From: Bugula neritina
Taxonomy: Eukaryota; Animalia; Bryozoa
Length of the DNA: 64,000 nucleotides
Direction: 5' to 3'
Assembly: GCA_964035545.1 (NCBI GenBank)
Contig: CAXIUT010000183.1
Coordinates: 1,054,001 to 1,118,000 of the forward strand
Made by a program: the position numbers and the translations under genes. Below, in pieces: positions 42,001 to 64,000 of the stretch (within the stretch, counting starts at the first letter, position 1; every line of letters begins with the position of its first letter). The notes under the pieces were generated by a model. The model ran no database searches, was not told where the DNA came from, and worked only from the letters and a program-made list of their open reading frames with translations.

Positions 42001-45000
42001 ATATATTGCGACACATTGCAATATACTGTAACATACTGAAAAATGCTGTAGCACACTGAAATATACTGCAATTCACTGAAATATACTGCAACATACTGAC
42101 ATACACCGCAACATCCTACAACATACTGAAATACTTTGTAACATATTGAAATACACTGCAACACATTGAAATATACTGCAACATAACGAACTATATGGTA
42201 ACCTACTGCAATATATTTTAACACATTGAAAAATACTGCAACATACTGAAATATATTTTAACACATTGAAAAATACTGCAACATACTGAAATATACTGTA
42301 ACACACCGAAATATACTGCAACATACTGAAATACACTGTAACATACTGAAATATACTGCAACATACTGCAATACACTGCTACATACTGCAACATACTGCA
42401 ACATACTGCAACATACTGAAATACACTGTAACATACTGAAATAAACTGCAACATACTACAACATATTGAAATACACTGCAACACATTGAAATATACTGCT
42501 ACATACCTAAATATACGGTAATATACTGAAATATACTGTAACACATTGAAAAAACTGCAACATACTGAAATACACTGCAACGCACTGAAATACACCGCAA
42601 AATACTACAACATGCTGAAATACACTGTAACATATTGAAATCCACTGCAACACATTGAAATATACTGCAACATACCGAAATATATGGTAAACTACTGAAA
42701 TAGACTTTAACACATTGAAAAATACTGCAACATACAGAAATATACTGTAACACACTGAAATATACTGCAACATACTGAAATATACTGCGACACATTGCAA
42801 TATACTGTAACATATTGAAATATGCTGTAGCACACTGAAATACACTGCAACATCCTACAACATACTGAAATACACTGTAACATATTGAAATACACTGCAA
42901 GAAATTGAAATAGACTGCAACATAACAAAATATATGGTAAACTACTGAAATAGACTTTAACACATTGAAAAATACTGCAACATACAGAAATATACTGTAA
43001 CACACTGAAATATACTGCAACATACTGAAATACACTGTAACATTCTGAAATATACTGCAACATACTGAAATACACTGCTACATACTGAAATATACTGCAA
43101 CATACTGCAAAATACTGCAACATACTGAAATACACTGTAACATATTGAAGTACACTGCAACACATTGAAATATACTGCAACATGCCAAAATATATGGTAA
43201 ACAACTGAAATATACTTTAACACATTGAAAAATACTGCAACATACTGAAATATACTGCGACACTTTGCAATATACTGTAACATACCGAAATATGCTCTAG
43301 CACACTGAAATACACTGCAACTCACTGAAATATACATCAACATACTGAAATACACTGTGACATCCTGAAATATACTGCAACATTCTGAAATACACTGCTA
43401 CATACTGAAATATACTGCATCATACTGCAACATACTGAAATACACTGCAACATACTACAACATACTGAAATACGCTGCAACACATTGAAATATACTGCAA
43501 CATACCTAAATATATGGTAATATACCGAAATATACTGTAACGCAATGCAAAATACTGCAACATACTGAAATACACTGCGACACACTGAAATACGCTGCAA
43601 AATACTACAACATACTGAAATAAACTGTAACACATTGAAATACACTGCAATACATTGAAAAATAATGCAATATACTGATATATACTGTAACACACTGAAA
43701 TATACTGCAACATACTGAAAAACACTGTAACATACTGAAATATACTGTAACATACTGCAACATACTGAAATACACTGTAACATACTGAGATACACTGCCG
43801 CATACTGCAACATATTGAACTACACTGCAACACATTGAAATATATTGCAACTTATCGAATATATGGAAAACTACTGAAATATACTGTAACGCATTGAAAA
43901 AGACTGCAACATACTGAAATATATTGCGACACATTGCAATATACTGTAATATACTGAAAAATGCTGTATCACACTGAAATATACTGCAATTCGCTGAAAT
44001 ATACTGCAACATACTGAAATACACCGCAACATCCTACAACATACTAAAATACACTGTAACATTTCGAAATACACTGCAACACATTGAATTATACTGCAAC
44101 ATAACGAAATATATGGTAAACTACTGAAATATATTTTAACAAATTGAAAAATACTGCAACATACTGAAATATACTGTAACACACTGAAGTATACTGCAAC
44201 ATACTGAAATACACTGTAACATACTGAAATATACTGCAACATACTGAAATACACTGCTACATACTGAAATATACTGCAACGTACTGCAACATACTGCAGC
44301 ATACTGAAATACACTGTAACATACTGAAACACACTGCAACATACTACCACATATTGAAATACACTGCAACACATTGAAATGTACTGCAACATACCGAAAT
44401 ATATGGTAAACTACTAAAATATACTGTAACACATTGAAAAATACTGCAACATACTGAAATATACTGCGACACCTAGCAATATACTGTAACATACTGAAAT
44501 ATGCTCTAGCACACTGAAATACAATGCAACTTACTGAAATATACTGCAACATACTGAAATACACTGCAACATCCTACAATATGCTGAAATACACAGTAAC
44601 ATATTGAAATACACTGCAACACTTTGAAATATACTGCAACATACCGAAATATATGGTAAACTACTGCAACATACTACAACATACTGAAATACACTGCAAC
44701 ACATTGAAATATACTGCGACATACCTAAATATACGGTAATATACTGAAATATACTGTAACACATTGAAAAATACTGCAACATACTGAAATATACTGTAAC
44801 ACACCGAAATATACTGCAACATACTGAAATACACTGTAACATACTGAAATACACTGCTACATACTGAAATATACTGCAACATACTGCAACATACTGAAAT
44901 ACACAGTAACATACTGAAATAAACTGCAACATACTACAACATATTGAAATACACTGCAACACATTGAAATATACTGCAACATACCTAAATATACGGTAAT

Positions 45001-48000
45001 ATACTGAAATTCACTGTAACGCATTGCAAAATACTGCAACATACTGAAATTCACTGCGACACACTGAAATACGCTGCAAAATACTACAACATACTGAAAT
45101 AAACTGTAACATGTTGAAATACACTGCAACACATTGAAAAATACTGCAACATACTGAAATATACTGTAACACACTGAAATATACTGCAACATACTGAAAT
45201 ACACTGTAACATACTGAAATATACTGCAACATACTGAAATACACTGCTACATACTGAAATATACTGCAACATACTGCAACATACTGCAATACACTGTAAA
45301 ATACTGAAATACACTGCAACATACTACAACATATTGAAATACACTGCAACACATTGAAATACACTGCAACTTATCAAATATATGGAAAACTACTGAAATA
45401 TACTGTAACGCATTGAAAAAGACTGCAACATACTGAAATATATTGCGACACATTGCAATATACTGTAATATACTGAAAAATGCTGTATCACACTGAAATA
45501 TACTGCAATTCGCTGAAATATACTGCAACATACTGAAATACACCGCAACATCCTACAACATACTAAAATACACTGTAACATTTCGAAATACACTGCAACA
45601 CATTGAATTATACTGCAACATAACGAAATATATGGTAAACTACTGAAATATATTTTAACAAATTGAAAAATACTGCAACATACTGAAATATACTGTAACA
45701 CACTGAAGTATACTGCAACATACTGAAATACACTGTAACATACTGAAATATACTGCAACATACTGAAATACACTGCTACATACTGAAATATACTGCAACG
45801 TACTGCAACATACTGCAGCATACTGAAATACACTGTAACATACTGAAATACACTGCAACATACTACCACATATTGAAATACACTGCAACACATTGAAATG
45901 TACTGCAACATACCGAAATATATGGTAAACTACTAAAATATACTGTAACACATTGAAAAATACTGCAACATACAGAAATATACTGTAACACACTGAAATA
46001 TACTGCAACATACTGAAATACACTGTAACATTCTGAAATATACTGCAACATACTGAAATACACTGCTACATACTGAAATATACTGCAACATACTGCAAAA
46101 TACTGCAACATACTGAAATACACTGTAACATATTGAAGTACACTGCAACACATTGAAATATACTGCAACATGCCAAAATATATGGTAAACAACTGAAATA
46201 TACTTTAACACATTGAAAAATACTGCAACATACTGAAATATACTGCGACACTTTGCAATATACTGTAACATACCGAAATATGCTCTAGCACACTGAAATA
46301 CACTGCAACTCACTGAAATATACTGCAACCTACTGAAATACACTGTGACATCCTGAAATATACTGCAACATTCTGAAATACACTGCTACATACTGAAATA
46401 TACTGCAACATACTGCAACATACTGAAATACACTGCAACATACTACAACATACTGAAATACGCTGCAACACATTGAAATATACTGCAACATACCTAAATA
46501 TACGGTAACATACCGAAATATACTGTAACGCATTGCAAAATACTGCAACATACTGAAATACACTGCGACACACTGAAATACGCTGCAAAATACTACAACA
46601 TACTGAAATAAACTGTAACACATTGAAATACACTGCAATACATTGAAAAATAATGCAATATACTGATATATACTGTAACACACTGAAATGTACTGCAACA
46701 TACTGAAATACACTGTAACATACTGAAATATACTGTAACATACTGCAACATACTGAAATACACTGTAACACATTGAAATATACTGCAACATACCGAAATA
46801 TATGGTAAACTACTGAAATATACTGTAACACATTGAAAAATACTGCAACATACTGAAATACACTGTAACATACTGAAATAAACTGCAACATACTACAACA
46901 TATTGAGATACACTGCAACAAATTGAAATATACTGCAACATACCTAAATATACGGTAATATACTGAAATTCACTGTAACGCATTGCAAAATACTACAACA
47001 TACTGAAATTCACTGCGACACACTGAAATACGCTGCAAAATACTACAACATACTGAAATAAACTGTAACATATTGAAATACACTGCAACACATTGAAATA
47101 TACTGCAACATAACAAAATATATGGTAAACTACTGAAATAGACTTTAACACATTGAAAAATACTGCAACATACTGAAATACACTGTAACATACTGAAATA
47201 TACTGCAACATACTGAAATACACTGCTACATACTGAAATATACTGCAACGTACTGCAACATACTCCAGCATACTGAAAGACACTGTAACATACTGAAATA
47301 CACTGCAACATACTACCACATATTGAAATACACTGCAACACATTGAAATGTACTGCAACATACCGAAATATATGGTAAACTACTAAAATATACTGTAACA
47401 TATTGAAAAATACTGCAACATACTGAAATATACTGCGACACCTAGCAATATACTGTAACATACTGAAATATGCTCTAGCACACTGAAATACAATGCAACA
47501 CATTGAAATATACTGCAACATACCTAAATATACGGTAATATACTGAAATTCACTGTAACGCATTGCAAAATACTGCAACATGCTGAAATACACTGCAACA
47601 TACTACCACATATTGAAATACACTGCAACATATTGAAATACACTGCAACACATTGAAAAATACTGCAACATACTGAAATATACTGTAACATACTGAAATG
47701 TACTGCAACATACCGAAATACACTGTAACATACTGAAATATACTGCAACATACTGAAATACACTGCTACATACTGAAATATACTGCAACATACTGCAACA
47801 TACTGCAATACACTGTAACATACTGAAATACACTGCAATATACTACAACATATTGAAATACACTGCAACACATTGAAATACACTGCAACTTACCGAATAT
47901 ATGGTAAACTACTGAAATATACTGTAACGCATTGAAAAATAATGCAACATACTGAAATATATTGCGACACATTGCAATATACTGTAACATACTGAAAAAT

Positions 48001-51000
48001 GCTGTAGCACACTGAAATATACTGCAATTCACTGAAATATACTGCAACATACTGACATACACCGCAACATCCTACAACATACTGAAATACTTTGTAACAT
48101 ATTGAAATACACTGCAACACATTGAAATATACTGCAACATAACGAACTATATGGTAACCTACTGAAATATATTTTAACACATTGAAAAATACTGCAACAT
48201 ACTGAAATATATTTTAACACATTGAAAAATACCACAACATACTGAAATATACTGTAACACACCGAAATATACTGCAACATACCGAAATACACTGTAACAT
48301 ACTGAAATATACTGCAACATACTGAAATACACTGCTACATACTGCAACATACTGCAACATACTGCAACATACTGAAATACACTGTAACATACTGAAATAA
48401 ACTGCAACATACTACAACATATTGAAATACACTGCAACACATTGAAATATACTGCTACATACCTAAATATACGGTAATATACTGAAATATACTGTAACAC
48501 ATTGAAAAAACTGCAACATACTGAAATACACTGCAACGCACTGAAATACACCGCAAAATACTACAACATGCTGAAATACACTGTAACATATTGAAATCCA
48601 CTGCAACACATTGAAATATACTGCAACATACCGAAATATATGGTAAACTACTGAAATAGACTTTAACACATTGAAAAATACTGCAACATACAGAAATATA
48701 CTGTAACACACTGAAATATACTGCAACATACTGAAATATACTGCGACACATTGCAATATACTGTAACATATTGAAATATGCTGTAGCACACTGAAATACA
48801 CTGCAACATCCTACAACATGCTGAAATACACTGTAACATATTGAAATACACTGCAAGAAATTGAAATAGACTGCAACATAACAAAATATATGGTAAACTA
48901 CTGAAATAGACTTTAACACATTGAAAAATACTGCAACATACAGAAATATACTGTAACACACTGAAATATACTGCAACATACTGAAATACACTGTAACATT
49001 CTGAAATATACTGCAACATACTGAAATACACTGCTACATACTGAAATATACTGCAACATACTGCAAAATACTGCAACATACTGAAATACACTGTAACATA
49101 TTGAAGTACACTGCAACACATTGAAATATACTGCAACATGCCAAAATATATGGTAAACAACTGAAATATACTTTAACACATTGAAAAATACTGCAACATA
49201 CTGAAATATACTGCGACACTTTGCAATATACTGTAACATACCGAAATATGCTCTAGCACACTGAAATACACTGCAACTCACTGAAATATACTGCAACATA
49301 CTGAAATATACTGTGACATCCTGAAATATACTGCAACATTCTGAAATACACTGCTACATACTGAAATATACTGCATCATACTGCAACATACTGAAATACA
49401 CTGCAACATACTACAACATACTTAAATACGCTGCAACACATTGAAATATACTGCAACATACCTAAATATATGGTAATATACCGAAATATACTGTAACGCA
49501 ATGCAAAATACTGCAACATACTGAAATACACTGCGACACACTGAAATACGCTGCAAAATACTACAACATACTGAAATAAACTGTAACACATTGAAATACA
49601 CTGCAATACATTGAAAAATAATGCAATATACTGATATATACTGTAACACACTGAAATATACTGCAACATACTGAAATACACTGTAACATACTGAAATATA
49701 CTGTAACATACTGCAACATACTGAAATACACTGTAACATACTGAGATACACTGCCGCATACTGCAACATATTGAACTACACTGCAACACATTGAAATATA
49801 TTGCAACTTATCGAATATATGGAAAACTACTGAAATATACTGTAACGCATTGAAAAAGACTGCAACATACTGAAATATATTGCGACACATTGCAATATAC
49901 TGTAATATACTGAAAAATGCTGTATCACACTGAAATATACTGCAATTCGCTGAAATATACTGCAACATACTGAAATACACCGCAACATCCTACAACATAC
50001 TAAAATACACTGTAACATTTCGAAATACACTGCAACACATTGAATTATACTGCAACATAACGAAATATATGGTAAACTACTGAAATATATTTTAACAAAT
50101 TGAAAAATACTGCAACATACTGAAATATACTGTAACACACTGAAGTATACTGCAACATACTGAAATACACTGTAACATACTGAAATATACTGCAACATAC
50201 TGAAATACACTGCTACATACTGAAATATACTGCAACGTACTGCAACATACTGCAGCATACTGAAATACACTGTAACATACTGAAATACACTGCAACATAC
50301 TACCACATATTGAAATACACTGCAACACATTGAAATGTACTGCAACATACCGAAATATATGGTAAACTACTAAAATATACTGTAACACATTGAAAAATAC
50401 TGCAACATACTGAAATATACTGCGACACCTAGCAATATACTGTAACATACTGAAATATGCTCTAGCACACTGAAATACAATGCAACTTACTGAAATATAC
50501 TGCAACATACTGAAATACACTGCAACATCCTACAATATGCTGAAATACACAGTAACATATTGAAATACACTGCAACACTTTGAAATATACTGCAACATAC
50601 CGAAATATATGGTAAACTACTGCAACATACTACAACATACTGAAATACACTGCAACACATTGAAATATACTGCGACATACCTAGATATACGGTAATATAC
50701 TGAAATATACTGTAACACATTGAAAAATACTGCAACATACTGAAATATACTGTAACACACCGAAATATACTGCAACATACTGAAATACACTGTAACATAC
50801 TGAAATACACTGCTACATACTGAAATATACTGCAACATACTGCAACATACTGAAATACACAGTAACATACTGAAATAAACTGCAACATACTACAACATAT
50901 TGAAATACACTGCAACACATTGAAATATACTGCAACATACCTAAATATACGGTAATATACTGAAATTCACTGTAACGCATTGCAAAATACTGCAACATAC

Positions 51001-51633
51001 TGAAATTCACTGCGACACACTGAAATACGCTGCAAAATACTACAACATACTGAAATAAACTGTAACATGTTGAAATACACTGCAACACATTGAAAAATAC
51101 TGCAACATACTGAAATATACTGTAACACACTGAAATATACTGCAACATACTGAAATACACTGTAACATACTGAAATATACTGCAACATACTGAAATACAC
51201 TGCTACATACTGAAATATACTGCAACATACTGCAACATACTGCAATACACTGTAAAATACTGAAATACACTGCAACATACTACAACATATTGAAATACAC
51301 TGCAACACATTGAAATACACTGCAACTTATCGAATATATGGAAAACTACTGAAATATACTGTAACGCATTGAAAAAGACTGCAACATACTGAAATATATT
51401 GCGACACATTGCAATATACTGTAATATACTGAAAAATGCTGTATCACACTGAAATATACTGCAATTCGCTGAAATATACTGCAACATACTGAAATACACC
51501 GCAACATCCTACAACATACTAAAATACACTGTAACATTTCGAAATACACTGCAACACATTGAAATGTACTGCAACATACCGAAATATATGGTAAACTACT
51601 AAAATATACTGTAACACATTGAAAAATACTGCA
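1..51633 (+). repeat. Satellite DNA array (left arm): 10-bp unit / 20-bp dimer ACTGCAACAT-ACTGAAATAY with higher-order structure
   Basis: Continuous tandem 10-mers of consensus ACTG(C/A/T)AA(C/T)A(C/T), all in one orientation. Variant 10-mers (ATGGTAAACT, GCTCTAGCAC, CCTACAACAT) recur, and identical ORF translations repeat at fixed offsets. Confidence 0.98.
51629..51633 (+). other. Target-site duplication, left copy (CTGCA)
   Basis: CTGCA directly precedes the 5' LTR TG and recurs at 60251-60255. Removing the element plus one copy restores the satellite sequence seen around 45963 and 21449. Confidence 0.93.
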
Positions 51634-51823
51634 TGTAATTAATTGGAATGCCAGTGAAATTTCTTGCTCTCATCAAAACAAACAAAGTTAACCAACGTGC
51701 CCATAATTAGAAAACCATTACATTAGTCATGTATATGTAGCTGTTTTGCTTTTATAGCTATGACAAATTTGCACACGAAAGTCAACGAGATTTCCTCATG
51801 TGTATGATTCACTATGACTAAGT

Positions 51824-51831
51824 TATATAAA
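51824..51831 (+). promoter_or_regulatory. Candidate TATA box of LTR promoter (TATATAAA)
   Basis: Consensus TATA in the U3-like part of the LTR, with an Inr-like TCAGCT ~25 nt downstream (51847-51852). The LTR is AT-rich, so a chance match is possible. Confidence 0.45.
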
Positions 51832-52072
51832 TAGTTTTTTACACCATCAGCTTCCTGAAATGATTCATCCATTGAAGTATATTTTACTCTCAGCTCTCAT
51901 TCTATGCTACACTTTCAGTCAGCTAACATGTAGCATAGACTGCTGAGTAACTTTTCACTTATGTTATATTAAATATTTTGTTGCATTTAAATCAATATTG
52001 TCAAAGTAGAGAATAAATACCTACTACATTAACATCAAAGTTATAAGCTCCATTCCTGGATGGTCTAACAAG

Positions 52073-52291
52073 GTAATTATTGCTATTGTAGTATTTTTGA
52101 CAATCATTTATGGCATTTGTATTATCCTTTTTTTAATATCAATTTTAATAATTTAGATGGTGTATACTGATTTTTATAGCAAGACTTGTTCTTTATTTGA
52201 AGCTTATTAGTTAGTGTCAAATTATCACTGATAAAAGTTTTATCACATATTATCATTCATTATAGCATATTCACAATTTCATTAATTGTAG
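52073..52291 (+). other. Predicted 219-nt GT-AG intron within the LTR (3' LTR copy 59946-60164)
   Basis: Donor CAAG|GTAATT, very AT/T-rich body, acceptor TTTCATTAATTGTAG|. The splice junction recreates the complement of the PBS position. No transcript evidence is available. Confidence 0.5.
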
Positions 52292-52377
52292 TTTTCACGA
52301 CAGTTTTACCAATAAAACATCAGTAGAGACTGAAGACCACATTGTGCCTGTTTACAAACCAGGGATGATAGTTTACA

Positions 52378-52393
52378 GTGAAAACTTGTGACT
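52378..52393 (+). other. Non-canonical primer-binding-site position (GTGAAAACTTGTGACT)
   Basis: Sits directly after the 5' LTR and lacks the TGG that pairs with tRNA CCA. It is complementary to LTR sequence 52290-52298 (9 nt) and to the predicted spliced junction (12 nt). Confidence 0.6.
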
Positions 52394-53090
52394 GGAGTAA
52401 ACAGCTTGCTAATCCTACAACCAGTGGCTTGCGCTAACTTGAGACCAGCGAGACAAACAGCAGCTAGAAAAGACAACTACTGATCCAGCCCCAGCATTGT
52501 TAGATCAGTATAGCATCCATCAACTCTACTGCCAAGTCTCCAGCATTGTCAACAACAGCTACACTGCCAACCACTATAGCAACCAGCACTCACACTCCTG
52601 TCATACATACAAGTTACAGCTAAGTAACCATTACTTCTAAGAATTCATTCACCGCTAATCACACAAGTTAGCAGTATCAGACTCATTGGAATTCAGTAGA
52701 ACGTTGCTAGCTTTGATCAAACATTACACAGAAACTATTTTTTATCACACAAGACTTGATTAAAAAATAATTTCTTTTCTGAGTATTGTAATATTGAAAA
52801 TATTTGTCTTTTTGTAGTCATAGGGAATCATTTCCTTATACTCATTCTGTAAATCTGTTCTTTATATTATTTATCACTGACACTAGGTATCAAATTTACT
52901 TGTGTAATAGTGAAATCATACATATAGAGGCAGTCTTATACTGCAAGTAGGTGCAGTATTCAATTTTCAAATTCAGCTACATATATTAGACAAATACTAC
53001 TTAGTTTTGCATGCACTATTGCACAATCATACATTAGAAACTTTTTGAGAGCAATTAATTTCATTGGCTGGCACTCAAATTCAGTAGCCT

Positions 53091-56000
53091 ATGAGTCATT
53101 ATCATAGCGCACGGCTGCGTGTTCAGCAACACTTAGAGCATATAAAAATATCATTAGAAATTATTAGTGAATTCCATTTGCTAGTAACTCGAGAATTGGC
53201 GGACAACATTACATTAATTCGCGCAAAAGAGCTGCGAAAACAGCTTCTAAACAATCAAACTGTACAAGAAGCCGAACAACATTTAACAGAAGCTCGCGGT
53301 TTAGGTATAAGTGAGGAGAAGCTGCGAAATATACTGCGTGAATTTGATCGTATTGCAGGCGATAGAAAAACTATTTTAACAAAACTTGAGCATTGGCTTC
53401 ATGCAATGGACGCCAATAGTTCTGACGGCGAAAATAGCACTTTCAAAATAGCAAAAGTTGATGTAAGATCTCGCGTGTTACCATCCATCCCTCCCTCAAA
53501 TATTTCAAAAATTGTCAAATCGCATGCTAGTCATTCCTCGAGTAAGTCAAAAAATTCAGTTGAGTCGGAACGCGCTGGGCCTGCCAAATCCGTCAGCGTA
53601 CATAGTTCTGATTATCAATCTAATCACTCCAAGTCAAAGAAATCTCATCATTCTAGTCACCATATTGGCAATTCCAGACATTCTGGATCTAGTGACATAT
53701 CCTCATCTCATGCACCTGATTCCGCTAGTGGTTCTTGGAAAACAAGAACTACTGGTACATCTAGATCCTCCAAATCTAATGCATCATACTATAAAGCTCA
53801 ATTAGCTAAATCTGCGGCTAAAGTTGCTGCTGCTGAAGCAAAGTTTCAAGCAGAGTGTGAAGCTCGGCAGGTTGAAGAGGAAATACAGCGTCTTGAGCTC
53901 AAGCACAAAGAGCAAATCCTCACTCGCAAAGGCCACATTGCCGAGCTGAAACTCAAAGCTGAAATCGATGCAGAGAAAGCTCAGCTCAATGCATTTCAGC
54001 AAGCCCTAGACGATGAGCTTGAAACTGAGCTTAGAGATACTCTCATGAGACCCCCTTCTAGAGCATCTCATAACTCATCGAAGCCTTCACCATTTCTGCA
54101 TTCTCCACATCATATTGACCTCTCAAATCAATTCCCATCAACTGGAGGTCAACCAGCTCACGATATAAAGCAGTCTTTAATGACTAAGGAGGAGTTGCCT
54201 CACCAAAGCCCAGGTATCCACAAAGATCCTTATGAACAATATCCACAAGTCAACTCAGCTGCTCATCTTCCCACACACCAAAATACTCATCCCACACATA
54301 CACACTTGCAATCACCTAACCCACTTACCAATCTGACCACTACAGATTTCTCCGCTGCTATAGGGAAGAGTATAGGTGACTCAATGGCCGCCGCTATGAC
54401 AATGCAAGCCAATCATCTTCCCACTCCTGACAAGTTTACTGGTGATCCGCTTGAGTACGCAGATTGGAAGCTGGCCTTTGATGGTTTGATTGGTTCTTGT
54501 CCATATACCGATTTACAGAAGCTCCATTTGTTGAGAGAGTATGTGGATGGCGATGCCAAGCAGGCTATAAGGGGCTATTTTTCATTGCAAAGTTCAAATG
54601 CGTATCAAGATGCATTACATGCTCTCGAAACTAAGTTTGGTTCGGAAGAGCTGATTGAAGAGCAGTTTCTAGACCGACTAGAAGCATGGCCTAGAGTAAC
54701 TGATGCCAAATCTCTCAAGAGTTACAGTTACTTCTTGAACCAATGTCTATCTGCCTCAAGGCAGATATCTGGTTTGAAAGTCCTGGACAGAAAACGGGAG
54801 AACAAAAAGCTAGCGAGTGTTCTGCCCAACAACCTTCAAGAACGATGGTTAAGACATGCCATTGCAGAGGAGGAAAAGAGAAAAGTGTTCCCTTCCTTTC
54901 ATAAATTTGCAGACTTTGTAGCACATGAGGCTAAAATTTCTTGTAGCAATTTGAGAGAAAAATATAAAAGTGGGTCCAGTAAAACTGCATTCAAGCCAAT
55001 CACCAAACAAAACAACAGCAAACACTCAATTACATTAAAATCTGAAACAACATTACCAACACCAATAGTTTCAAAAACTTCAGAATTAGTCAAAAATCAA
55101 CAAAAACATGCTAATAAGTCACAACACACTGACAGCCAGTCAGCAAAACAACAAAACAGCCTGTCATTTGACCAAAAGCAGAGAAAAGAACCAGAATGTG
55201 CATACTGCCTCTCAAACAAAAAACCCAGATGGAAACACCACACTGCTCACTGCTGGAATTTAGCAAAACTTTCTGCTCAACAAGTAAATGACTTCCTTGC
55301 TAGCAACAGCTTATGTTTCAAATGTGCCGTAAGCGGTCACAGTTACAAAAACTGCAACATGAAACCAGTATGTGAGACATGTAAGCAAGCTCATCCCACA
55401 ACATTTCACCAGAAATACACATCTCAACCCACAAAGCAAGCAGATGAAAGTAAAATGCAATGTTCAAACCAAAATAAAGATAGCACAGTATGCAATAATC
55501 TTTCCATAAATACATCACAAACACTCATGTCTATGACTCTTCCTGTTTGGGTTTCTTCTGTCAAAGATCCACATACAAAAGTATTAACATATGCCAACCT
55601 TGACTCAGGCAGCGACTCATGTTATATAACCAATTCTATTGTTGAACAACTCACATGCACCAAAAAACCAACTAAACTGCCAATGGCAACAATGACACAC
55701 CAAAACTTTGAGCTAGATACAATGGTAACCGATGACCTAATCATCAAAGGATATAGCTGCAATAAGGAGGTGAAACTTCCTAATGTGTATTCTGCAGAAG
55801 AAATACCTGCTAAGTATGAGTCTATTCCACAGGCGGGTGCTCTTACCGCCTGGCCACATTTACAAGACTTGGCAAAAAACATGGTCAAGGGACAAAACAT
55901 TTCAGTAGGTCTACTCATTGGAGGCAACTGCCCATTAGCCTTCAAACCTAGAGAGGTAGTAGTGGGAAACGACGCAGACGATGAACCATTTAGCGTACGT

Positions 56001-59000
56001 ACTGACCTAGGGTGGGTTATCATGGGTAGTCTAGCTACAAATAACACACATGATGACAATTCAGGCAGCAAAACAACAATAGTCAATAAAACCGTAACTC
56101 ATTCACCCAAGAAAGCTAAAACCACGGTATCTTTCAAATGCCAAACTGAAACATCAAAACAAATTAACAAAATAATAAATATATTGGCTCAAGATTTCAA
56201 GGAATGTGTAACAGACAAAGAAGCGGCTTCTGTAGAAGACCGAGCATTTTTGTCTCTCATGAAACAAGAAACAAAGATCATTGATGGTCATGTCACCATG
56301 CCTCTACCTTTCAAACACAAACCACCACGAAATAACAGTTTTAAAACAGCAAAAAACCGATTCAATTCACTACTGAAAAAGTTCTCTAAGAATCAAAACT
56401 TGGAAAACCAGTACAAAAAGTTCATGGAAGACCTCATTAGCAAGGGTGAGGCTGAAATAGTTCCACAAGGCTTAGCTAGCCATGAGGACAGCACATGGTA
56501 CATACCACATTTCGAGGTATGGCATCCAAAGAAGCCAGGCAAGATTAGAGTAGTCTTCGATGGTGCTGCAAAGACAGATGGAAAGTGCATAAACGACTAT
56601 CTCATGACAGGTCCAGATCATCTAAACAGTCTAACTGGTATCCTCCTTCGCTTCCGCCAGGAACAGATTGCTGTTACATGTGATATTGAGCGAATGTTTC
56701 ACCAATTTCGTGTTGCAACGGAAGATACAGATTATCTCCGATTTTTCTGGCTAGATGAACGTGGTGAAATAGCAGTGTTCCGCATAAAAGTGCATGTGTT
56801 TGGAGCGACCTCGTCTCCTGCATGTGCAACATATGGCCTACGTTATCTGGCTGACCAATACAGCACAGATGATCCATCAAGTCAACAAGCCCGAAACTTC
56901 ATTAGAAATCAGTTCTATGTGGATGACGGCTTGCTTAGTATGCCTGACGCAACATCTGCAACAAAAGTACTTACTGAGGCAATGAGAATTTGCCAACAAG
57001 GTAAAGTACACTTGCACAAGATTCTTTCTAACGAGAAAGAAGTATTAAATTCATTCCCCAAATCTGAACAATCTGCAACTCTGCATGATCTTGACCTAAA
57101 CTCTGACTGTCTTCCAACTGAAAGAACTTTGGGATTGATGTGGAATTCTGAGCAAGATTCCTTTCAGTTTCAAGTTAATCTCGCTAATAAGCCCAACACT
57201 AGACGAGGTGTGCTCTCAAATGTAGCCTCGGTCTTTGATCCACTTGGCCTCATATCACCGGTTATACTGCAAGGTAAAATGGTTCTCCAAGATCTTTGCA
57301 GAAAACATTTAGACTGGGATGATCCTTTAGATGAAAGCATGCTGGCAAAATGGTTGCCATGGAAACAAAGCCTCAACGATCTTGAACACCTATCAATTCC
57401 TAGAAACTACGTACCATCATCATTTGGAACACCTGCTAAGGTTGAGCTCCATACCTTTAGCGACGCGAGTACAACGGGCTACGGCCAATGCTCCTACTTG
57501 CGATTTGTAAGCCCAGCCAAACGTGTGCATGTTGCTTTAATCTGTAGCAAAGGTCGTGTCACTCCGCTCAAAGCTATTACTGTTCCCAGATTGGAACTTC
57601 AAGCAGCACGTGGGGCTGTAGATTTAAGCCTCAAGGCAGCAGAAGAGCTAGGTATGGACAATGTAGCTCAGTACTTTTATTCTGACTCAGAAGTAGTTCT
57701 TGGTTATATAAAGAACACACAGGCTAGATATCACACATTTGTTGCAAATCGAGTTCAGCAAATCCGTGACGGCTCCAATGCCGACAACTGGTTTCATGTC
57801 CCAACTAAACTCAACCCTGCAGATCATGCATCACGTGGGTTATCACCAAAGCAAATTTTCTCTCCTGAGTGCATTTGGTTCACAGGACCAGACTTCTTGT
57901 GGAATGAACCTCTCATACTCCCTCATCAGAAAAAATTCATCAACTCACATGACGATCAAGAAGTGAAAGTTTCATTAGCCACTCAACACATCCTTGCTCC
58001 TCTTAGTCAGCGTATAACCATTTTCTCTAACCTAGATTACACTCTTAAGGTTATTGCTAGAATCCAAACAGCACTATGCAAAACCCCTCTCACTCAGCAA
58101 GAGAAACGCCAAAAAGCGTTACACTCTTTGGTCAAGTCAGTTCAATCAGAATTCTTCACTCCAGAAATCAAGCAACTCCAACAAACTCAGACTACATCTA
58201 AGCATAGCTCCATTGCAAAACTATGCCCATTTCTAGATAAGGCGGGTCTACTCAGGGTGGGAGGAAGGCTACAAAACAGTAAATTGCTATCATTCGAAGA
58301 AAAACATCCTTTACTCTTACCTAAGCATAGTCATCTCACTATGCTTATCATAAATGACACACATGCAAAACTAGGACACCTTGGCTTAGAGTATACTCTG
58401 TCTAAAATAAGATCACAGGGATTTTGGATCATCGGTGGTAAATCCACAATTTCATCAAAGCTACGTCTCTGTGTAACATGTAAAAGAATCAAAGCTAAAC
58501 CCTTGACACCACAAATGGCAACATTACCATCAGTGAGAGTTAACGAAGCCCCTCCTTTCACCCACTGTGGATTAGATTGTTTCGGCCCTTTTATTGTCAA
58601 GAATGGTAGAAAGGAATCGAAACGATATGGCTTGATAGTCACATGTATGGCCTCACGAGCTGTTCACATTGAACTTTTAGAGGACATGACTACTGACAGC
58701 TTTATAAACGCTATCAGGACTGTGGTAGCCATTAGGGGTCCAATTCAGACAATTCAATCAGACCAAGGTACCAACTTCATTGGTGCCGCGAGTCTTCTAC
58801 AAAGTGATGGGACCGACAGCAAACTTAAATCTATGAACATCACAATGAATTTCAACCCTCCTCACTCTAGCAATTTTGGAGGAGTGTGGGAAAGGCAGAT
58901 AAGGACTATCCGCTCTGTGCTACAAGGCCTTGGAACGAGACATGGTGGGAGGCTCTCTACCTCTTTGCTACGAACTTTGTTTTATGAAGTGATGGCCATC

Positions 59001-59459
59001 ATAAACTGTCGCCCATTAACCTCAACAACTGATGACATGCTTCCAATCACCCCAAACATGTTGTTGACTATGAAGTCTGACGTTGTTCTACCACCTCCAA
59101 GCACATTTGAGGAGGCAGACATATATGCGAGGAAGCGTTGGAGAGTGGTCCAGCAGTTGGCAAATGAATTTTGGACACGCTGGCGCAAGCAATACTTGCT
59201 CTATTTACAGTCGCGGCAAAAATGGGTAAATAAAGTACCAGAGATCAAGGTGGGGGATATCGTTCTACTGTGTGATGACAATACAGTAAGAAATCAGTGG
59301 CCTTTAGCACGTGTCGTAGAATGCAACCTGTCTCATGACAGCGTTGTTAGATCAGTTAAGGTGCTTGTTGGTAGTAAAACATACCCCAAAGACTCCAATA
59401 AAAGAGTCTATTTAATTCGACCAATATCAAAATTAGTTGTACTAGTCCGATCGAGCTAA
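53091..59459 (+). CDS. gag-pol: BEL/Pao Gag-Pol polyprotein, 2122 aa (Gag with three Cys/His knuckles, aspartic protease, reverse transcriptase, RNase H, integrase)
   Basis: Gag core FTGDPLEYADWKLAF. Knuckles CAYC..HHTAHC, CFKCAVSGHSYKNC and CETCKQAHPTTFH (55197-55409). Protease LDSGS (D at 55602). RT KPGKIRVVFD, DIERMFHQ, FGATSSP, YVDD (56916-56927). RNase H HTFSDAS, PRLELQAA, YSDSEVVL, NPADHASRG. Integrase H-H-CVTC, GLDCFGP (58575), SDQGTNF (58761), GVWER (58890) and C-terminal FWTRWRKQYL...WPLARV. No stops or frameshifts; the start codon is the ORF-track ATG and is unverified. Confidence 0.96.
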   Translation: MSHYHSARLRVQQHLEHIKISLEIISEFHLLVTRELADNITLIRAKELRKQLLNNQTVQEAEQHLTEARGLGISEEKLRNILREFDRIAGDRKTILTKLEHWLHAMDANSSDGENSTFKIAKVDVRSRVLPSIPPSNISKIVKSHASHSSSKSKNSVESERAGPAKSVSVHSSDYQSNHSKSKKSHHSSHHIGNSRHSGSSDISSSHAPDSASGSWKTRTTGTSRSSKSNASYYKAQLAKSAAKVAAAEAKFQAECEARQVEEEIQRLELKHKEQILTRKGHIAELKLKAEIDAEKAQLNAFQQALDDELETELRDTLMRPPSRASHNSSKPSPFLHSPHHIDLSNQFPSTGGQPAHDIKQSLMTKEELPHQSPGIHKDPYEQYPQVNSAAHLPTHQNTHPTHTHLQSPNPLTNLTTTDFSAAIGKSIGDSMAAAMTMQANHLPTPDKFTGDPLEYADWKLAFDGLIGSCPYTDLQKLHLLREYVDGDAKQAIRGYFSLQSSNAYQDALHALETKFGSEELIEEQFLDRLEAWPRVTDAKSLKSYSYFLNQCLSASRQISGLKVLDRKRENKKLASVLPNNLQERWLRHAIAEEEKRKVFPSFHKFADFVAHEAKISCSNLREKYKSGSSKTAFKPITKQNNSKHSITLKSETTLPTPIVSKTSELVKNQQKHANKSQHTDSQSAKQQNSLSFDQKQRKEPECAYCLSNKKPRWKHHTAHCWNLAKLSAQQVNDFLASNSLCFKCAVSGHSYKNCNMKPVCETCKQAHPTTFHQKYTSQPTKQADESKMQCSNQNKDSTVCNNLSINTSQTLMSMTLPVWVSSVKDPHTKVLTYANLDSGSDSCYITNSIVEQLTCTKKPTKLPMATMTHQNFELDTMVTDDLIIKGYSCNKEVKLPNVYSAEEIPAKYESIPQAGALTAWPHLQDLAKNMVKGQNISVGLLIGGNCPLAFKPREVVVGNDADDEPFSVRTDLGWVIMGSLATNNTHDDNSGSKTTIVNKTVTHSPKKAKTTVSFKCQTETSKQINKIINILAQDFKECVTDKEAASVEDRAFLSLMKQETKIIDGHVTMPLPFKHKPPRNNSFKTAKNRFNSLLKKFSKNQNLENQYKKFMEDLISKGEAEIVPQGLASHEDSTWYIPHFEVWHPKKPGKIRVVFDGAAKTDGKCINDYLMTGPDHLNSLTGILLRFRQEQIAVTCDIERMFHQFRVATEDTDYLRFFWLDERGEIAVFRIKVHVFGATSSPACATYGLRYLADQYSTDDPSSQQARNFIRNQFYVDDGLLSMPDATSATKVLTEAMRICQQGKVHLHKILSNEKEVLNSFPKSEQSATLHDLDLNSDCLPTERTLGLMWNSEQDSFQFQVNLANKPNTRRGVLSNVASVFDPLGLISPVILQGKMVLQDLCRKHLDWDDPLDESMLAKWLPWKQSLNDLEHLSIPRNYVPSSFGTPAKVELHTFSDASTTGYGQCSYLRFVSPAKRVHVALICSKGRVTPLKAITVPRLELQAARGAVDLSLKAAEELGMDNVAQYFYSDSEVVLGYIKNTQARYHTFVANRVQQIRDGSNADNWFHVPTKLNPADHASRGLSPKQIFSPECIWFTGPDFLWNEPLILPHQKKFINSHDDQEVKVSLATQHILAPLSQRITIFSNLDYTLKVIARIQTALCKTPLTQQEKRQKALHSLVKSVQSEFFTPEIKQLQQTQTTSKHSSIAKLCPFLDKAGLLRVGGRLQNSKLLSFEEKHPLLLPKHSHLTMLIINDTHAKLGHLGLEYTLSKIRSQGFWIIGGKSTISSKLRLCVTCKRIKAKPLTPQMATLPSVRVNEAPPFTHCGLDCFGPFIVKNGRKESKRYGLIVTCMASRAVHIELLEDMTTDSFINAIRTVVAIRGPIQTIQSDQGTNFIGAASLLQSDGTDSKLKSMNITMNFNPPHSSNFGGVWERQIRTIRSVLQGLGTRHGGRLSTSLLRTLFYEVMAIINCRPLTSTTDDMLPITPNMLLTMKSDVVLPPPSTFEEADIYARKRWRVVQQLANEFWTRWRKQYLLYLQSRQKWVNKVPEIKVGDIVLLCDDNTVRNQWPLARVVECNLSHDSVVRSVKVLVGSKTYPKDSNKRVYLIRPISKLVVLVRSS

Positions 59460-59497
59460 ACATACATTCAAAATTACAAGTCACTTTTAGAAATTTC

Positions 59498-59506
59498 AGG
59501 TGGGAG
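59498..59506 (+). other. Polypurine tract (plus-strand primer), AGGTGGGAG
   Basis: Purine-rich run immediately abutting the 3' LTR TG, the canonical PPT position. Confidence 0.85.
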
Positions 59507-60250
59507 TGTAATTAATTGGAATGCCAGTGAAATTTCTTGCTCTCATCAAAACAAACAAAGTTAACCAACGTGCCCATAATTAGAAAACCATTACATTAGT
59601 CATGTATATGTAGCTGTTTTGCTTTTATAGCTATGACAAATTTGCACACGAAAGTCAACGAGATTTCCTCATGTGTATGATTCACTATGACTAAGTTATA
59701 TAAATAGTTTTTTACACCATCAGCTTCCTGAAATGATTCATCCATTGAAGTATATTTTACTCTCAGCTCTCATTCTATGCTACACTTTCAGTCAGCTAAC
59801 ATGTAGCATAGACTGCTGAGTAACTTTTCACTTATGTTATATTAAATATTTTGTTGCATTTAAATCAATATTGTCAAAGTAGAGAATAAATACCTACTAC
59901 ATTAACATCAAAGTTATAAGCTTCATTCCTGGATGGTCTAACAAGGTAATTATTGCTATTGTAGTATTTTTGACAATCATTTATGGCATTTGTATTATCC
60001 TTTTTTTAATATCAATTTTAATAATTTAGATGGTGTATACTGATTTTTATAGCAAGACTTGTTCTTTATTTGAAGCTTATTAGTTAGTGTCAAATTATCA
60101 CTGATAAAAGTTTTATCACATATTATCATTCATTATAGCATATTCACAATTTCATTAATTGTAGTTTTCACGACAGTTTTACCAATAAAACATCAGTAGA
60201 GACTGAAGACCACATTGTGCCTGTTTACAAACCAGGGATGATAGTTTACA
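59507..60250 (+). repeat. 3' LTR (744 bp)
   Basis: Copy of the 5' LTR at offset 7873. The only difference seen by eye is C52050 vs T59923. Confidence 0.97.
60184..60189 (+). terminator. Candidate polyadenylation signal AATAAA in the 3' LTR (5' copy 52311-52316)
   Basis: AATAAA 61 nt before the LTR end, followed by a TTGTGCCTGTTT GU-rich stretch, as expected near an R/U5 boundary. Confidence 0.6.
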
Positions 60251-60255
60251 CTGCA
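60251..60255 (+). other. Target-site duplication, right copy (CTGCA)
   Basis: Directly follows the 3' LTR ...TTTACA. Confidence 0.93.
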
Positions 60256-63200
60256 ACATACAGAAATATACTGTAACACACTGAAATATACTGCAACATA
60301 CTGAAATACACTGTAACATTCTGAAATATACTGCAACATACTGAAATACACTGCTACATACTGAAATATACTGCAACATACTGCAAAATACTGCAACATA
60401 CTGAAATACACTGTAACATATTGAAGTACACTGCAACACATTGAAATATACTGCAACATGCCAAAATATATGGTAAACAACTGAAATATACTTTAACACA
60501 TTGAAAAATACTGCAACATACTGAAATATACTGCGACACTTTGCAATATACTGTAACATACCGAAATATGCTCTAGCACACTGAAATACACTGCAACTCA
60601 CTGAAATATACTGCAACCTACTGAAATACACTGTGACATCCTGAAATATACTGCAACATTCTGAAATACACTGCTACATACTGAAATATACTGCAACATA
60701 CTGCAACATACTGAAATACACTGCAACATACTACAACATACTGAAATACGCTGCAACACATTGAAATATACTGCAACATACCTAAATATACGGTAACATA
60801 CCGGAATATACTGTAACGCATTGCAAAATACTGCAACATACTGAAATACACTGCGACACACTGAAATACGCTGCAAAATACTACAACATACTGAAATAAA
60901 CTGTAACACATTGAAATACACTGCAATACATTGAAAAATAATGCAATATACTGATATATACTGTAACACACTGAAATATACTGCAACATACTGAAATACA
61001 CTGTAACATACTGAAATATACTGTAACATACTGCAACATACTGAAATACACTGTAACATACTGAGATACACTGCCGCATACTGCAACATATTGAACTACA
61101 CTGCAACACATTGAAATATAATGCAACTTATCGAATATATGGAAAACTACTGAAATATACTGTAACGCATTGAAAAAGACTGCAACATACTGAAATATAT
61201 TGCGACACATTGCAATATACTGTAATATACTGAAAAATGCTGTATCACACTGAAATATACTGCAATTCGCTGAAATATACTGCAACATACTGAAATACAC
61301 CGCAACATCCTACAACATACTAAAATACACTGTAACATTTCGAAATACACTGCAACACATTGAATTATACTGCAACATAACGAAATATATGGTAAACTAC
61401 TGAAATATATTTTAACAAATTGAAAAATACTGCAACATACTGAAATATACTGTAACACACTGAAGTATACTGCAACATACTGAAATACACTGTAACATAC
61501 TGAAATATACTGCAACATACTGAAATACACTGGTACATACTGAAATATACTGCAACGTACTGCAACATACTGCAGCATACTGAAATACACTGTAACATAC
61601 TGAAATACACTGCAACATACTACCACATATTGAAATACACTGCAACACATTGAAATGTACTGCAACATACCGAAATATATGGTAAACTACTAAAATATAC
61701 TGTAACACATTGAAAAATACTGCAACATACTGAAATATACTGCGACACCTAGCAATATACTGTAACATACTGAAATATGCCCTAGCACACTGAAATACAA
61801 TGCAACTTACTGAAATATACTGCAACATACTGAAATACACTGCAACATCCTACAATATGCTGAAATACACAGTAACATATTGAAATACACTGCAACACTT
61901 TGAAATATACTGCAACATACCGAAATATATGGTAAACTACTGCAACATACTACAACATACTGAAATACACTGCAACACATTGAAATATACTGCGACATAC
62001 CTAAATATACGGTAATATACTGAAATATACTGTAACACATTGAAAAATACTGCAACATACTGAAATATACTGTAACACACCGAAATATACTGCAACATAC
62101 TGAAATACACTGTAACATACTGAAATACACTGCTACATACTGAAATATACTGCAACATACTGCAACATACTGAAATACACAGTAACATACTGAAATAAAC
62201 TGCAACATACTACAACATATTGAAATACACTGCAACACATTGAAATATACTGCAACATACCTAAATATACGGTAATATACTGAAATTCACTGTAACGCAT
62301 TGCAAAATACTGCAACATACTGAAATTCACTGCGACACACTGAAATACGCTGCAAAATACTACAACATACTGAAATAAACTGTAACATGTTGAAATACAC
62401 TGCAACACATTGAAAAATACTGCAACATACTGAAATATACTGTAACACACTGAAATATACTGCAACATACTGAAATACACTGTAACATACTGAAATATAC
62501 TGCAACATACTGAAATACACTGCTTCATACTGAAATATACTGCAACATACTGCAACATACTGCAATACACTGTAAAATACTGAAATACACTGCAACATAC
62601 TACAACATATTGAAATACACTGCAACACATTGAAATACACTGCAACTTATCGAATATATGGAAAACTACTGAAATATACTGTAACGCATTGAAAAAGACT
62701 GCAACATACTGAAATATATTGCGACACATTGCAATATACTGTAATATACTGAAAAATGCTGTATCACACTGAAATATACTGCAATTCGCTGAAATATACT
62801 GCAACATACTGAAATACACCGCAACATCCTACAACATACTAAAATACACTGTAACATTTCGAAATACACTGCAACACATTGAATTATACTGCAACATAAC
62901 GAAATATATGGTAAACTACTGAAATATATTTTAACAAATTGAAAAATACTGCAACATACTGAAATATACTGTAACACACTGAAGTATACTGCAACATACT
63001 GAAATACACTGTAACATACTGAAATATACTGCAACATACTGAAATACACTGCTACATACTGAAATATACTGCAACGTACTGCAACATACTGCAGCATACT
63101 GAAATACACTGTAACATACTGAAATACACTGCAACATACTACCACATATTGAAATACACTGCAACACATTGAAATGTACTGCAACATACCGAAATATATG

Positions 63201-64000
63201 GTAAACTACTAAAATATACTGTAACACATTGAAAAATACTGCAACATACTGAAATATACTGCGACACCTAGCAATATACTGTAACATACTGAAATATGCT
63301 CTAGCACACTGAAATACAATGCAACTTACTGAAATATACTGCAACATACTGAAATACACTGCAACATCCTACAATACGCTGAAATACACAGTAACATATT
63401 GAAATACACTGCAACACTTTGAAATATACTGCAACATACCGAAGTATATGGTAAACTACTGCAACATACTACAACATACTGAAATACACTGCAACACATT
63501 GAAATATACTGCGACATACCTAAATATACGGTAATATACTGAAATATACTGTAACACATTGAAAAATACTGCAACATACTGAAATATACTGTAACACACC
63601 GAAATATACTGCAACATACTGAAATACACTGTAACATACTGAAATACACTGCTACATACTGAAATATACTGCAACATACTGCAACATACTGAAATACACA
63701 GTAACATACTGAAATAAACTGCAACATACTACAACATATTGAAATACACTGCAACACATTGAAATATACTGCAACATACTTAAATATACGGTAATATACT
63801 GAAATTCACTGTAACGCATTGCAAAATACTGCAACATACTGAAATTCACTGCGACACACTGAAATACGCTGCAAAATACTACAACATACTGAAATAAACT
63901 GTAACATGTTGAAATACACTGCAACACATTGAAAAATACTGCAACATACTGAAATATACTGTAACACACTGAAATATACTGCAACATACTGAAATACACT
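60251..64000 (+). repeat. Satellite DNA array (right arm), same family, continuing beyond the window
   Basis: Same 10/20-bp unit resumes immediately after the 3' LTR. Joining the two flanks regenerates normal satellite (GAAAAATA-CTGCA-ACATACAGAAAT). Confidence 0.98.

Follow-up and report, generated by a model that had tools for sequence, protein, structure and literature searches.

A BEL/Pao retrotransposon of Bugula neritina whose reverse transcription primer may be assembled by splicing within its own long terminal repeat

The stretch of DNA analysed here, referred to as the window, comprises 64,000 nucleotides (nt) of the bryozoan Bugula neritina (assembly GCA_964035545.1, contig CAXIUT010000183.1, positions 1,054,001 to 1,118,000 of the forward strand) and carries an intact long terminal repeat (LTR) retrotransposon on the plus strand at 51634-60250 (Table 1). 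The two LTRs differ by a single base, and the 5' LTR ends in ..TTTACA. Judged by its predicted gene content, the element is a member of BEL/Pao, since DUF1759, reverse transcriptase (RT), Peptidase_A17, integrase zinc and DUF5641 domains follow each other in one frame of a Pao-type polyprotein. Domain analysis revealed E-values of 2.4e-48 for Peptidase_A17, 6.3e-25 for DUF5641, 6.7e-08 for DUF1759 and 7e-07 for Integrase_H2C2, and a weak RVT_1 match under the Pfam cut-off. The closest named proteins, from the bryozoan Watersipora subatra, carry the same domain set. About eight full-length copies, along with solo or decayed LTRs of the window family, were found in the 216-Mb genome. The subject of this report is the way in which such an element may start reverse transcription, namely from a primer contained in its own LTR-derived RNA.

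Table 1. Positions of the retrotransposon features in the window.
Feature	Position	Strand	Remarks
Left target-site duplication, CTGCA	51629-51633	+	right copy at 60251-60255
5' LTR	51634-52377	+	744 bp, TG..CA ends; 99.87% identity to 3' LTR (self-BLAST)
TATA-like words AATAAATA (52012-52019) and TATAAG (52042-52047)	52012-52047	+	putative promoter role
3' part of LTR exon 1	52050-52072	+	initiator-like CCATTCC (52050-52056), GGTC (52062-52065), ACAAG (52068-52072)
Predicted LTR intron	52073-52291	+	219 nt, GT..AG, 78% A+T; same intron in 3' LTR at 59946-60164
Exon 2 start, TTTTCAC	52292-52298	+	complements first 7 bases after LTR
Rest of R and U5	52299-52377	+	loop of proposed hairpin; AATAAA poly(A) signal at 52311-52316
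Primer-binding site, GTGAAAACTTGTGACT	52378-52393	+	bases 1-12 in perfect pairing with predicted spliced junction
Untranslated leader	52394-53090	+	
Single open reading frame	53091-59459	+	2122 aa, BEL/Pao-type gag-pol; DUF1759, RT, Peptidase_A17, integrase zinc domain, DUF5641
Polypurine tract, AGGTGGGAG	59498-59506	+	near-identical across all related families
3' LTR	59507-60250	+	744 bp; intron copy inside at 59946-60164

As the initial annotation of the sequence had pointed out, the 5' LTR is not followed by TGG; GTGAAAACTTGT (52378-52389) directly abuts the LTR end. A 9-nt complement of this primer-binding site (PBS), AGTTTTCAC, is present in the unspliced LTR at 52290-52298, 79 nt before the LTR end. 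Further upstream, ACAAG precedes a GT (52073-52074), and TTTTCAC is itself preceded by an AG (52290-52291); removal of 52073-52291 thus gives ACAAGTTTTCAC, that is ACAAG joined to TTTTCAC, a perfect reverse complement of the first 12 post-LTR bases. PBS bases 13-16 pair with GGTC, with a 2-nt bulge between the two helices. The bases and coordinates given in the annotation for the PBS, the 9-nt complement, the ACAAG/TTTTCAC junction and the GGTC-GACT pairing all proved correct on recheck, and its observation that the duplex ends at the LTR boundary was found to hold in the window and in every related family. In shuffled LTRs, an anchored 9-nt complement arose in 0.6% of the trials and an anchored 12-nt complement, either contiguous or across any GT..AG removal, in 0.1%. 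An Rfam scan of LTR and leader yielded no match.

The joint 52072^52292, which the annotation had predicted, was recovered in contigs of four public runs (X1 to X4) from three studies, where it was reported as 52070 to 52290 'GT..AG (cut +2)', corresponding to 52072^52292 and skipping 219 bases. The runs were available as assembled contigs, which cannot reveal RNA ends, and their RNA nature is an automated guess. A 24-mer spanning the joint had no match in the 216-Mb genome, with up to three mismatches allowed. In X3, the joint contig showed a depth of 45.8 and was about five times deeper than a contig inside the intron (8.2), with a depth of 56.1 for an upstream LTR contig ending exactly at 52072. 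A DNA library of the genome could not yield a joint-to-intron ratio of 46:8, which argues for an RNA origin of the X3 joint. In X1, the joint was deeper (930) than the upstream LTR (390), in agreement with the presence of further, spliced 5' RNAs. Based on the presence of the joint in contigs and its absence from the genome, the X3 depth ratio, the consensus-like donor (CAAG/GTAATT) and acceptor (ttaattgtAG/T) and the A+T content of 78%, 52073-52291 is interpreted as an efficiently spliced spliceosomal intron. An extra-A variant in the AATAAA region (52313) was also present in the contigs of each of the four runs, at about half of the depth, and there seem to be two expressed subfamilies differing at this position. 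Contig ends at 52728 and 56457 are not splice donors and probably stem from diverged copies.

Intact copies within the window family are identical at donor, acceptor and PBS and are, thus, uninformative for covariation; L029 is truncated by another repeat. Further BEL/Pao families were located in the same genome, and the family comparison, confined to LTR, PBS and leader, was drawn from other assemblies, with relatives retrieved via protein searches and one metagenome scan. This comparison, which had been proposed together with the self-priming idea, revealed that the complementarity between junction and PBS is kept with compensated changes in 21 other families from four phyla. The hosts included two bryozoan genomes, the sea star Patiria miniata (L095), the acorn worm Glandiceps talaboti (L096) and zebrafish (L101), plus metagenome and Logan contigs; L093 and L094 are from Watersipora. 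All elements with accessible LTR and leader follow a shared plan. The LTR ends in ..ACA (in a few cases ..TCA or ..CCA) and continues with GT[G/A/C]..; a pyrimidine-rich tract and an AG lie some 60-165 nt upstream of the LTR end, after which come 5-8 bases with a terminal AC (AT in one family) and, mostly, GGTG; and AATAAA is found shortly downstream, at 13-25 nt in most families and at 48 nt in zebrafish. The predicted intron measures 165-326 nt in most families.

The exon-2 complements differ by family, with TTTTCAC, TTTTTCAC, TTTCAC, TTTTTAC, ATCTCAC, ATCTTAC, TTGAC, TTTCGAC, TTCTCAC, TAATTAC, ATTTTAC and ATTGTTAT being represented, and yet the exon-2 part showed 100% Watson-Crick pairing with the first post-LTR bases in 22/22 families, with at most four pair types per column. 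This tracking of each family's own LTR by the PBS fits self-priming and not a conserved tRNA. In several leaders, a PBS-like word (GTGAAACT.. or GTTGAAACT..) is repeated two or three times just 3' of the PBS (L092:80-170, L107:15-100, L100:745-800, L122:797-860). The RNA 5' end was sought in Logan and European Nucleotide Archive (ENA) contigs, and none was obtained; the contigs of L097, L102 and L091 closed on the unspliced LTR, and those of L098, L099 and L103 are interrupted close to the PBS or within the LTR.

Since the AG at the end of the intron equals the usual exon end AG, the spliced and the unspliced pairing partner are separable only further out. Spliced pairing extends over 10-12 nt in 22/22 families versus 6-10 nt for the unspliced LTR; exon position -3 pairs in 22/22 families (A-T, G-C and T-A types) versus 0/21 for intron position -3, and exon position -4 pairs in 14/22 with four pair types, counts that are inflated by the donors of ten metagenome families having been taken as the best-pairing GT. 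L103, the donor of which was not fixed, was left out, and L122, L133 and L135 have no usable donor. For the window element, where the donor is set by contigs, splicing adds three pairs, ACA-TGT (1 in 64), and GGTC-GACT. In the bryozoan-type families, a common exon-1 block (CTCTCCTGGA.GG..) marks homologous donors independently of the PBS.

Strong donors are present in L102 (GTCG/GTAAGA) and L119 (AACG/GTAAGG); both exons end in CG, with CG at the matching place of the PBS, where the intron AG would mismatch, so that the unspliced match amounts to 6 and 9 nt and the spliced match to 10 and 12 nt, respectively. Zebrafish offers a textbook vertebrate acceptor, and pairing over the junction takes in 16/16 post-LTR bases, interrupted by a 2-nt bulge, which is the geometry of the window element. 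L116 is intron-less, with both LTR copies (255-275 and 6955-6975) carrying the joined AAG·CTCTTAC in the DNA; this is a 10-nt complement of its PBS, GTAAGAGCTT, and is located where its relatives L095, L096 and L121 have ..CGAG/intron/ATCT[C/T]AC. L116 may show the outcome of copying a spliced RNA.

Short exon-2 parts accompany longer exon-1 parts (r = -0.57), as would be expected if a minimum duplex length of 10 bp were being kept. For the first 11 families, a shuffle of the PBS tail with maximum extension over all GT sites gave a combined p of 8e-4, and in each of them the donor chosen by consensus or homology reached the maximal extension among all GT sites; shuffling of exon 1 with the AG kept gave p 1e-4. 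The spliced partner was better than the unspliced one by 5-10 kcal/mol in 10/10 cases. Ungapped pairing never goes past exon position -5.

The last point touches on the transcription start. TATAAG lies 31 nt before the donor, a spacing common to several families, and a TATA-like word is found 30-35 nt before the donor in the window element, L092, L095, L096 and zebrafish. These positions hint at a start very close to the exon end, within a few bases of it. The spliced RNA would then have the complementary bases almost at its 5' end, as in Tf1, and the limit at position -5 would be explained. Against such a start stands the zebrafish element, which pairs six more bases beyond the bulge, and we know of no capped first exons as tiny as this. 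A start at the initiator-like CCATTCC would give a 21-nt exon. The sole difference between the LTRs, C at 52050 versus T at 59923, falls within this motif (CCATTCC/TCATTCC) and adjoins the pairing part of exon 1; both C and T occur among the genomic copies.

On the available evidence, we consider it probable that the element primes itself in a Tf1-like manner, with a primer segment assembled by splicing, and the self-priming interpretation of the initial annotation is supported, none of the three outcomes it had named as refuting having materialised. According to this model, a BEL/Pao lineage would start reverse transcription from its own LTR RNA and not from a tRNA. The spliceosome would remove the 219-nt intron, joining the end of a short exon 1 (..GGTCTAACAAG) to TTTTCAC, and the resulting ..GGTC-(UA)-ACAAG/UUUUCAC would pair with GUGAAAACUUGUGACU, the 12-16 bases after the 5' LTR, with the last pair at the LTR boundary and 79 nt of R/U5 as hairpin loop. 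A cut after ..CAC (C52298), presumably by the element's ribonuclease H (RNase H) in analogy to Tf1, would leave a 3'-OH for priming the minus strand at the last U5 base. The primer RNA would end in ..ACAAGUUUUCAC, and its unspliced counterpart would carry the intron bases ..UUGUAGUUUUCAC. Strong-stop DNA would cover 52377 down to 52299 and move to the corresponding stretch upstream of the poly(A) site in the 3' LTR, and the last 10-12 bases of the primer would be copied back into the PBS, by which both sides would be kept matched over time. The lack of intron-less LTRs in the genome favours separate roles for the two RNA forms, the spliced one donating the primer and the unspliced one serving as template. 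As the intron persists in new copies, the spliced RNA is more likely to act on an unspliced partner RNA than on itself. Pairing, cut, priming and strand transfer in vivo we infer by analogy with known self-primed elements.

Besides the inflated pairing counts, several observations weigh against a primer made by splicing. The X3 joint depth does not exceed that of the upstream LTR, which fits splicing in the 3' LTR only, and some contigs pass from the LTR end into flanking DNA, implying DNA or read-through in the runs. No intron-less LTR was found in the 216-Mb genome, though most of the joint-bearing RNA is spliced; RNA spliced in its 3' LTR is, therefore, not the template for new copies. Exon-1 swaps between families were marginal (p ~0.06, 289/5040 permutations), unanchored duplex energies of exon 1 versus PBS were not significant (2216/5040 permutations), nor was a PBS-blind donor picker based on the intron-side consensus, which is too noisy in AT-rich LTRs, and the ten metagenome families alone gave a hand-combined p of ~0.08; L122 and L133 are without an exon-1 extension. 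In addition, the AG preceding the complement is compatible with an initiator as well (pyrimidine, A, N, A/T, pyrimidines), which holds for the families examined, and in the window the TATA-like word TATAG lies 29 nt upstream. This speaks for Tf1-like self-priming without a role for splicing, in which 8-10 bases of the unspliced LTR, AGTTTTCAC in the window, would fold back on the PBS and RNase H would cut after ..CAC, the intron being a separate matter and removed chiefly from the 3' LTR portion of the transcript. The contiguous complement of AG plus 5-8 bases is indeed perfect and covaries in all families, and the position of AATAAA is as expected for a short R. The X3 depths fit as well, with the upstream LTR (56) equalling joint (46) plus intron (8) and R (~98) equalling the 3' plus the 5' ends, as for 5'-LTR RNAs starting at the acceptor. 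It requires, however, that in about 20 families transcription starts at a 3' splice site that is in use, and the zebrafish context is a textbook acceptor without TATA. The pairing extends into exon 1 and never into the intron, as evident from position -3; the match would shrink to 6 nt in L102 and 9 nt in L119, the intron A being mismatched, and L116 has exon-1-like bases, not intron bases, before its complement. We regard the unspliced alternative as weakened and, on balance, unlikely.

It is improbable, in our judgement, that the complementarity is real and serves a role other than priming, such as hiding the PBS or the 3' splice site, switching leader folds, or marking spliced or unspliced RNA for packaging or translation, with the true primer being something else. 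The junction-PBS helix was within the minimum-energy fold in 6/11 families. In the other 5/11 folds, it lost to a second conserved helix, formed by the 5' part of exon 1 with the U5 3' end (TTCCTGG, 52053-52059, with CCAGGGA, 52359-52365), which crosses the junction-PBS helix, so that the two are mutually exclusive. In zebrafish, CCCTTTGG pairs with CCAAAGGG in the same way, and such complementarity is also present in L093, L097, L100, L096 and L091; according to the predicted folds, the exon 1-U5 helix could be a conformational switch. A non-priming role would also agree with the lack of intron-less LTRs in the genome, by which spliced and unspliced RNAs are evidently treated differently. Contrary to this, the junction-PBS helix stops exactly at the LTR boundary in every family, as defines a PBS, its run length is kept at 10-12 nt, like the 11 nt of Tf1, and no other primer candidate was found among the sampled tRNAs, the 12-mer loci and Rfam. 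The tRNA sample, which is incomplete, consisted of 57 scored tRNA genes representing 35 distinct tRNAs, the best of which shares 7 nt with the PBS, with tRNA-Arg sharing 5 nt and tRNA-Gly 4 nt. Of the 86 genomic 12-mer sites, 30 were taken and 28 scanned by ARAGORN; no tRNA was detected in 26/28 loci and none overlaps the 12-mer, the tRNA genes at one locus (L048) lying hundreds of bases away from it. The remaining candidate is a host tRNA fragment priming as in copia, namely the 5' half that tRNA-Glu(UUC) would yield on cleavage behind its anticodon loop. At least five host gene copies of this tRNA carry ..GGATTCCTGGTTTTCAC with the anticodon loop TTTTCAC, and the half ending in ..GGTTTTCAC matches the PBS over 8 nt, as compared to 9 nt for the unspliced LTR and 12 nt for the spliced junction. 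Thus, in the comparison with host tRNAs called for by the initial annotation, no sampled tRNA equalled the junction and tRNA-Glu(UUC) was best. Exon 1 (52052-52067), with ATTCCTGG and TGGTCTA, and the exon 2 start TTTTCAC consist of tRNA-Glu(UUC) words (..TGGTCTAGGGGTTAGGATTCCTGGTTTTCAC), in an order that differs between exons and tRNA (P ~0.0008 by exon-1 shuffling); these words may be the trace of a tRNA-half-primed ancestor. In related families, the tRNA-Glu(UUC) match is just 2-7 nt and always below that of the element's own RNA, and of its words only TCCTGG is shared. As the start of the PBS varies by family, following the own LTR and not one conserved tRNA, and TGG is lacking, priming by the tRNA-Glu(UUC) fragment is very improbable, and a conserved tRNA primer in general is unlikely given the comparative data, despite the incomplete tRNA sample.

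The proposed primer assembled by splicing has its nearest parallel in Tf1/Tf2 and the sushi-type Ty3/gypsy elements, for which self-priming has reportedly been described by Levin and co-workers, with a complement of 11 nt in Tf1. As in these elements, a site beside the 5' LTR complements upstream RNA of the element itself (over 10-12 nt in the present case), the helix directly adjoins the end of the LTR, R/U5 provides the loop and no tRNA would be needed. Unlike them, the window element belongs to BEL/Pao, with a Pao-type pol, and not to the Ty3/gypsy chromoviruses, so that it would work alike without being a member; in most families, moreover, the complement is split in the DNA by the spliceosomal intron and whole only after splicing. 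The Tf1 complement is the very 5' end of the RNA, cut by RNase H; for the window element, the TATA-like words hint at a very short first exon, the contig depths of X1 and X3 disagree, and an RNase H cut is proposed. The literature includes a mention of self-priming (PMC7175516) and one of hairpin priming in certain chromoviruses (PMC3601003).

For the Belpaoviridae, the International Committee on Taxonomy of Viruses (ICTV) describes priming by host tRNA at an 18-nt PBS that complements the 3' portion of tRNA-Arg or tRNA-Gly, with replication being called poorly understood (PMC8742986). The window element resembles this family in gene content, TG..CA ends of the LTR, a 4-6 bp target duplication and the polypurine tract, but its lineage is without the 18-nt site of tRNA-Arg/Gly type. 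The retrotransposon copia is primed by an internally cut initiator tRNA. Similarities to copia comprise the PBS not starting with TGG, the proposed 3' end of the primer from an internal cut and the identity of TTTTCAC with the anticodon loop of host tRNA-Glu(UUC), whereas the tRNA match of 8 nt is not kept in relatives and the own RNA matches better everywhere. Retroviral leaders may contain a splice donor in or near R, as in deltaretroviruses; the donor inside LTR-derived RNA and the different fates of spliced and unspliced RNA are alike in the window element, in which, unlike in the retroviral leaders, donor and acceptor both lie within the LTR and the junction itself matches the PBS. Literature searches revealed neither a self-primed BEL/Pao element nor a primer-forming LTR intron, an absence that is no proof, and priming, introns and splicing are unmentioned in a survey of BEL/Pao. 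Self-priming as such being known, we rate the assembly of the primer by splicing as the new part.

Concerning the genomic setting, the element is surrounded by a long 10/20-bp satellite with the unit AAATATACTGCAACATACTG (40000-51633 and 60251-64000), and insertion into it left a clean CTGCA duplication. Two LTR copies (L016 and L018) are arranged head to head, inverted, on genome contig C6 (2106481-2107191). At L062 and L073 (contig C214, ~44.0-45.4 kb), about 11 tRNA genes within ~1.3 kb were found in the order Met, Asn, His, Ser, Phe, Lys, Pro, Ser, Glu, Met, Tyr, a cluster that is organelle-like or bacterium-like and possibly indicates a symbiont or contaminant contig.

Extended beyond the window, the proposal would describe a widespread and old BEL/Pao lineage, reaching from bryozoans to fish, with a primer made by host splicing, the sequence of which is not in the DNA, and with spliced RNA as donor and unspliced RNA as template; we hold this wider claim to be evenly balanced. 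If true, self-priming would extend past the Tf1/sushi Ty3/gypsy elements to a second superfamily and to at least four animal phyla, and the splicing-dependent primer would tie reverse transcription to the host spliceosome in a new way. The intron would then be retained in the LTRs, despite its expected loss when spliced RNA is copied, because the primer needs splicing. LTR annotation tools seeking tRNA-type sites would miss or mis-score such elements, for which the comparison provides a searchable signature, namely AG, 5-8 bases ending in AC and, 60-170 nt on, ..CA followed by the complement. As zebrafish carries such elements, the idea is testable on existing data. The host spliceosome would be required for retrotransposition in this lineage and could serve to tune it.

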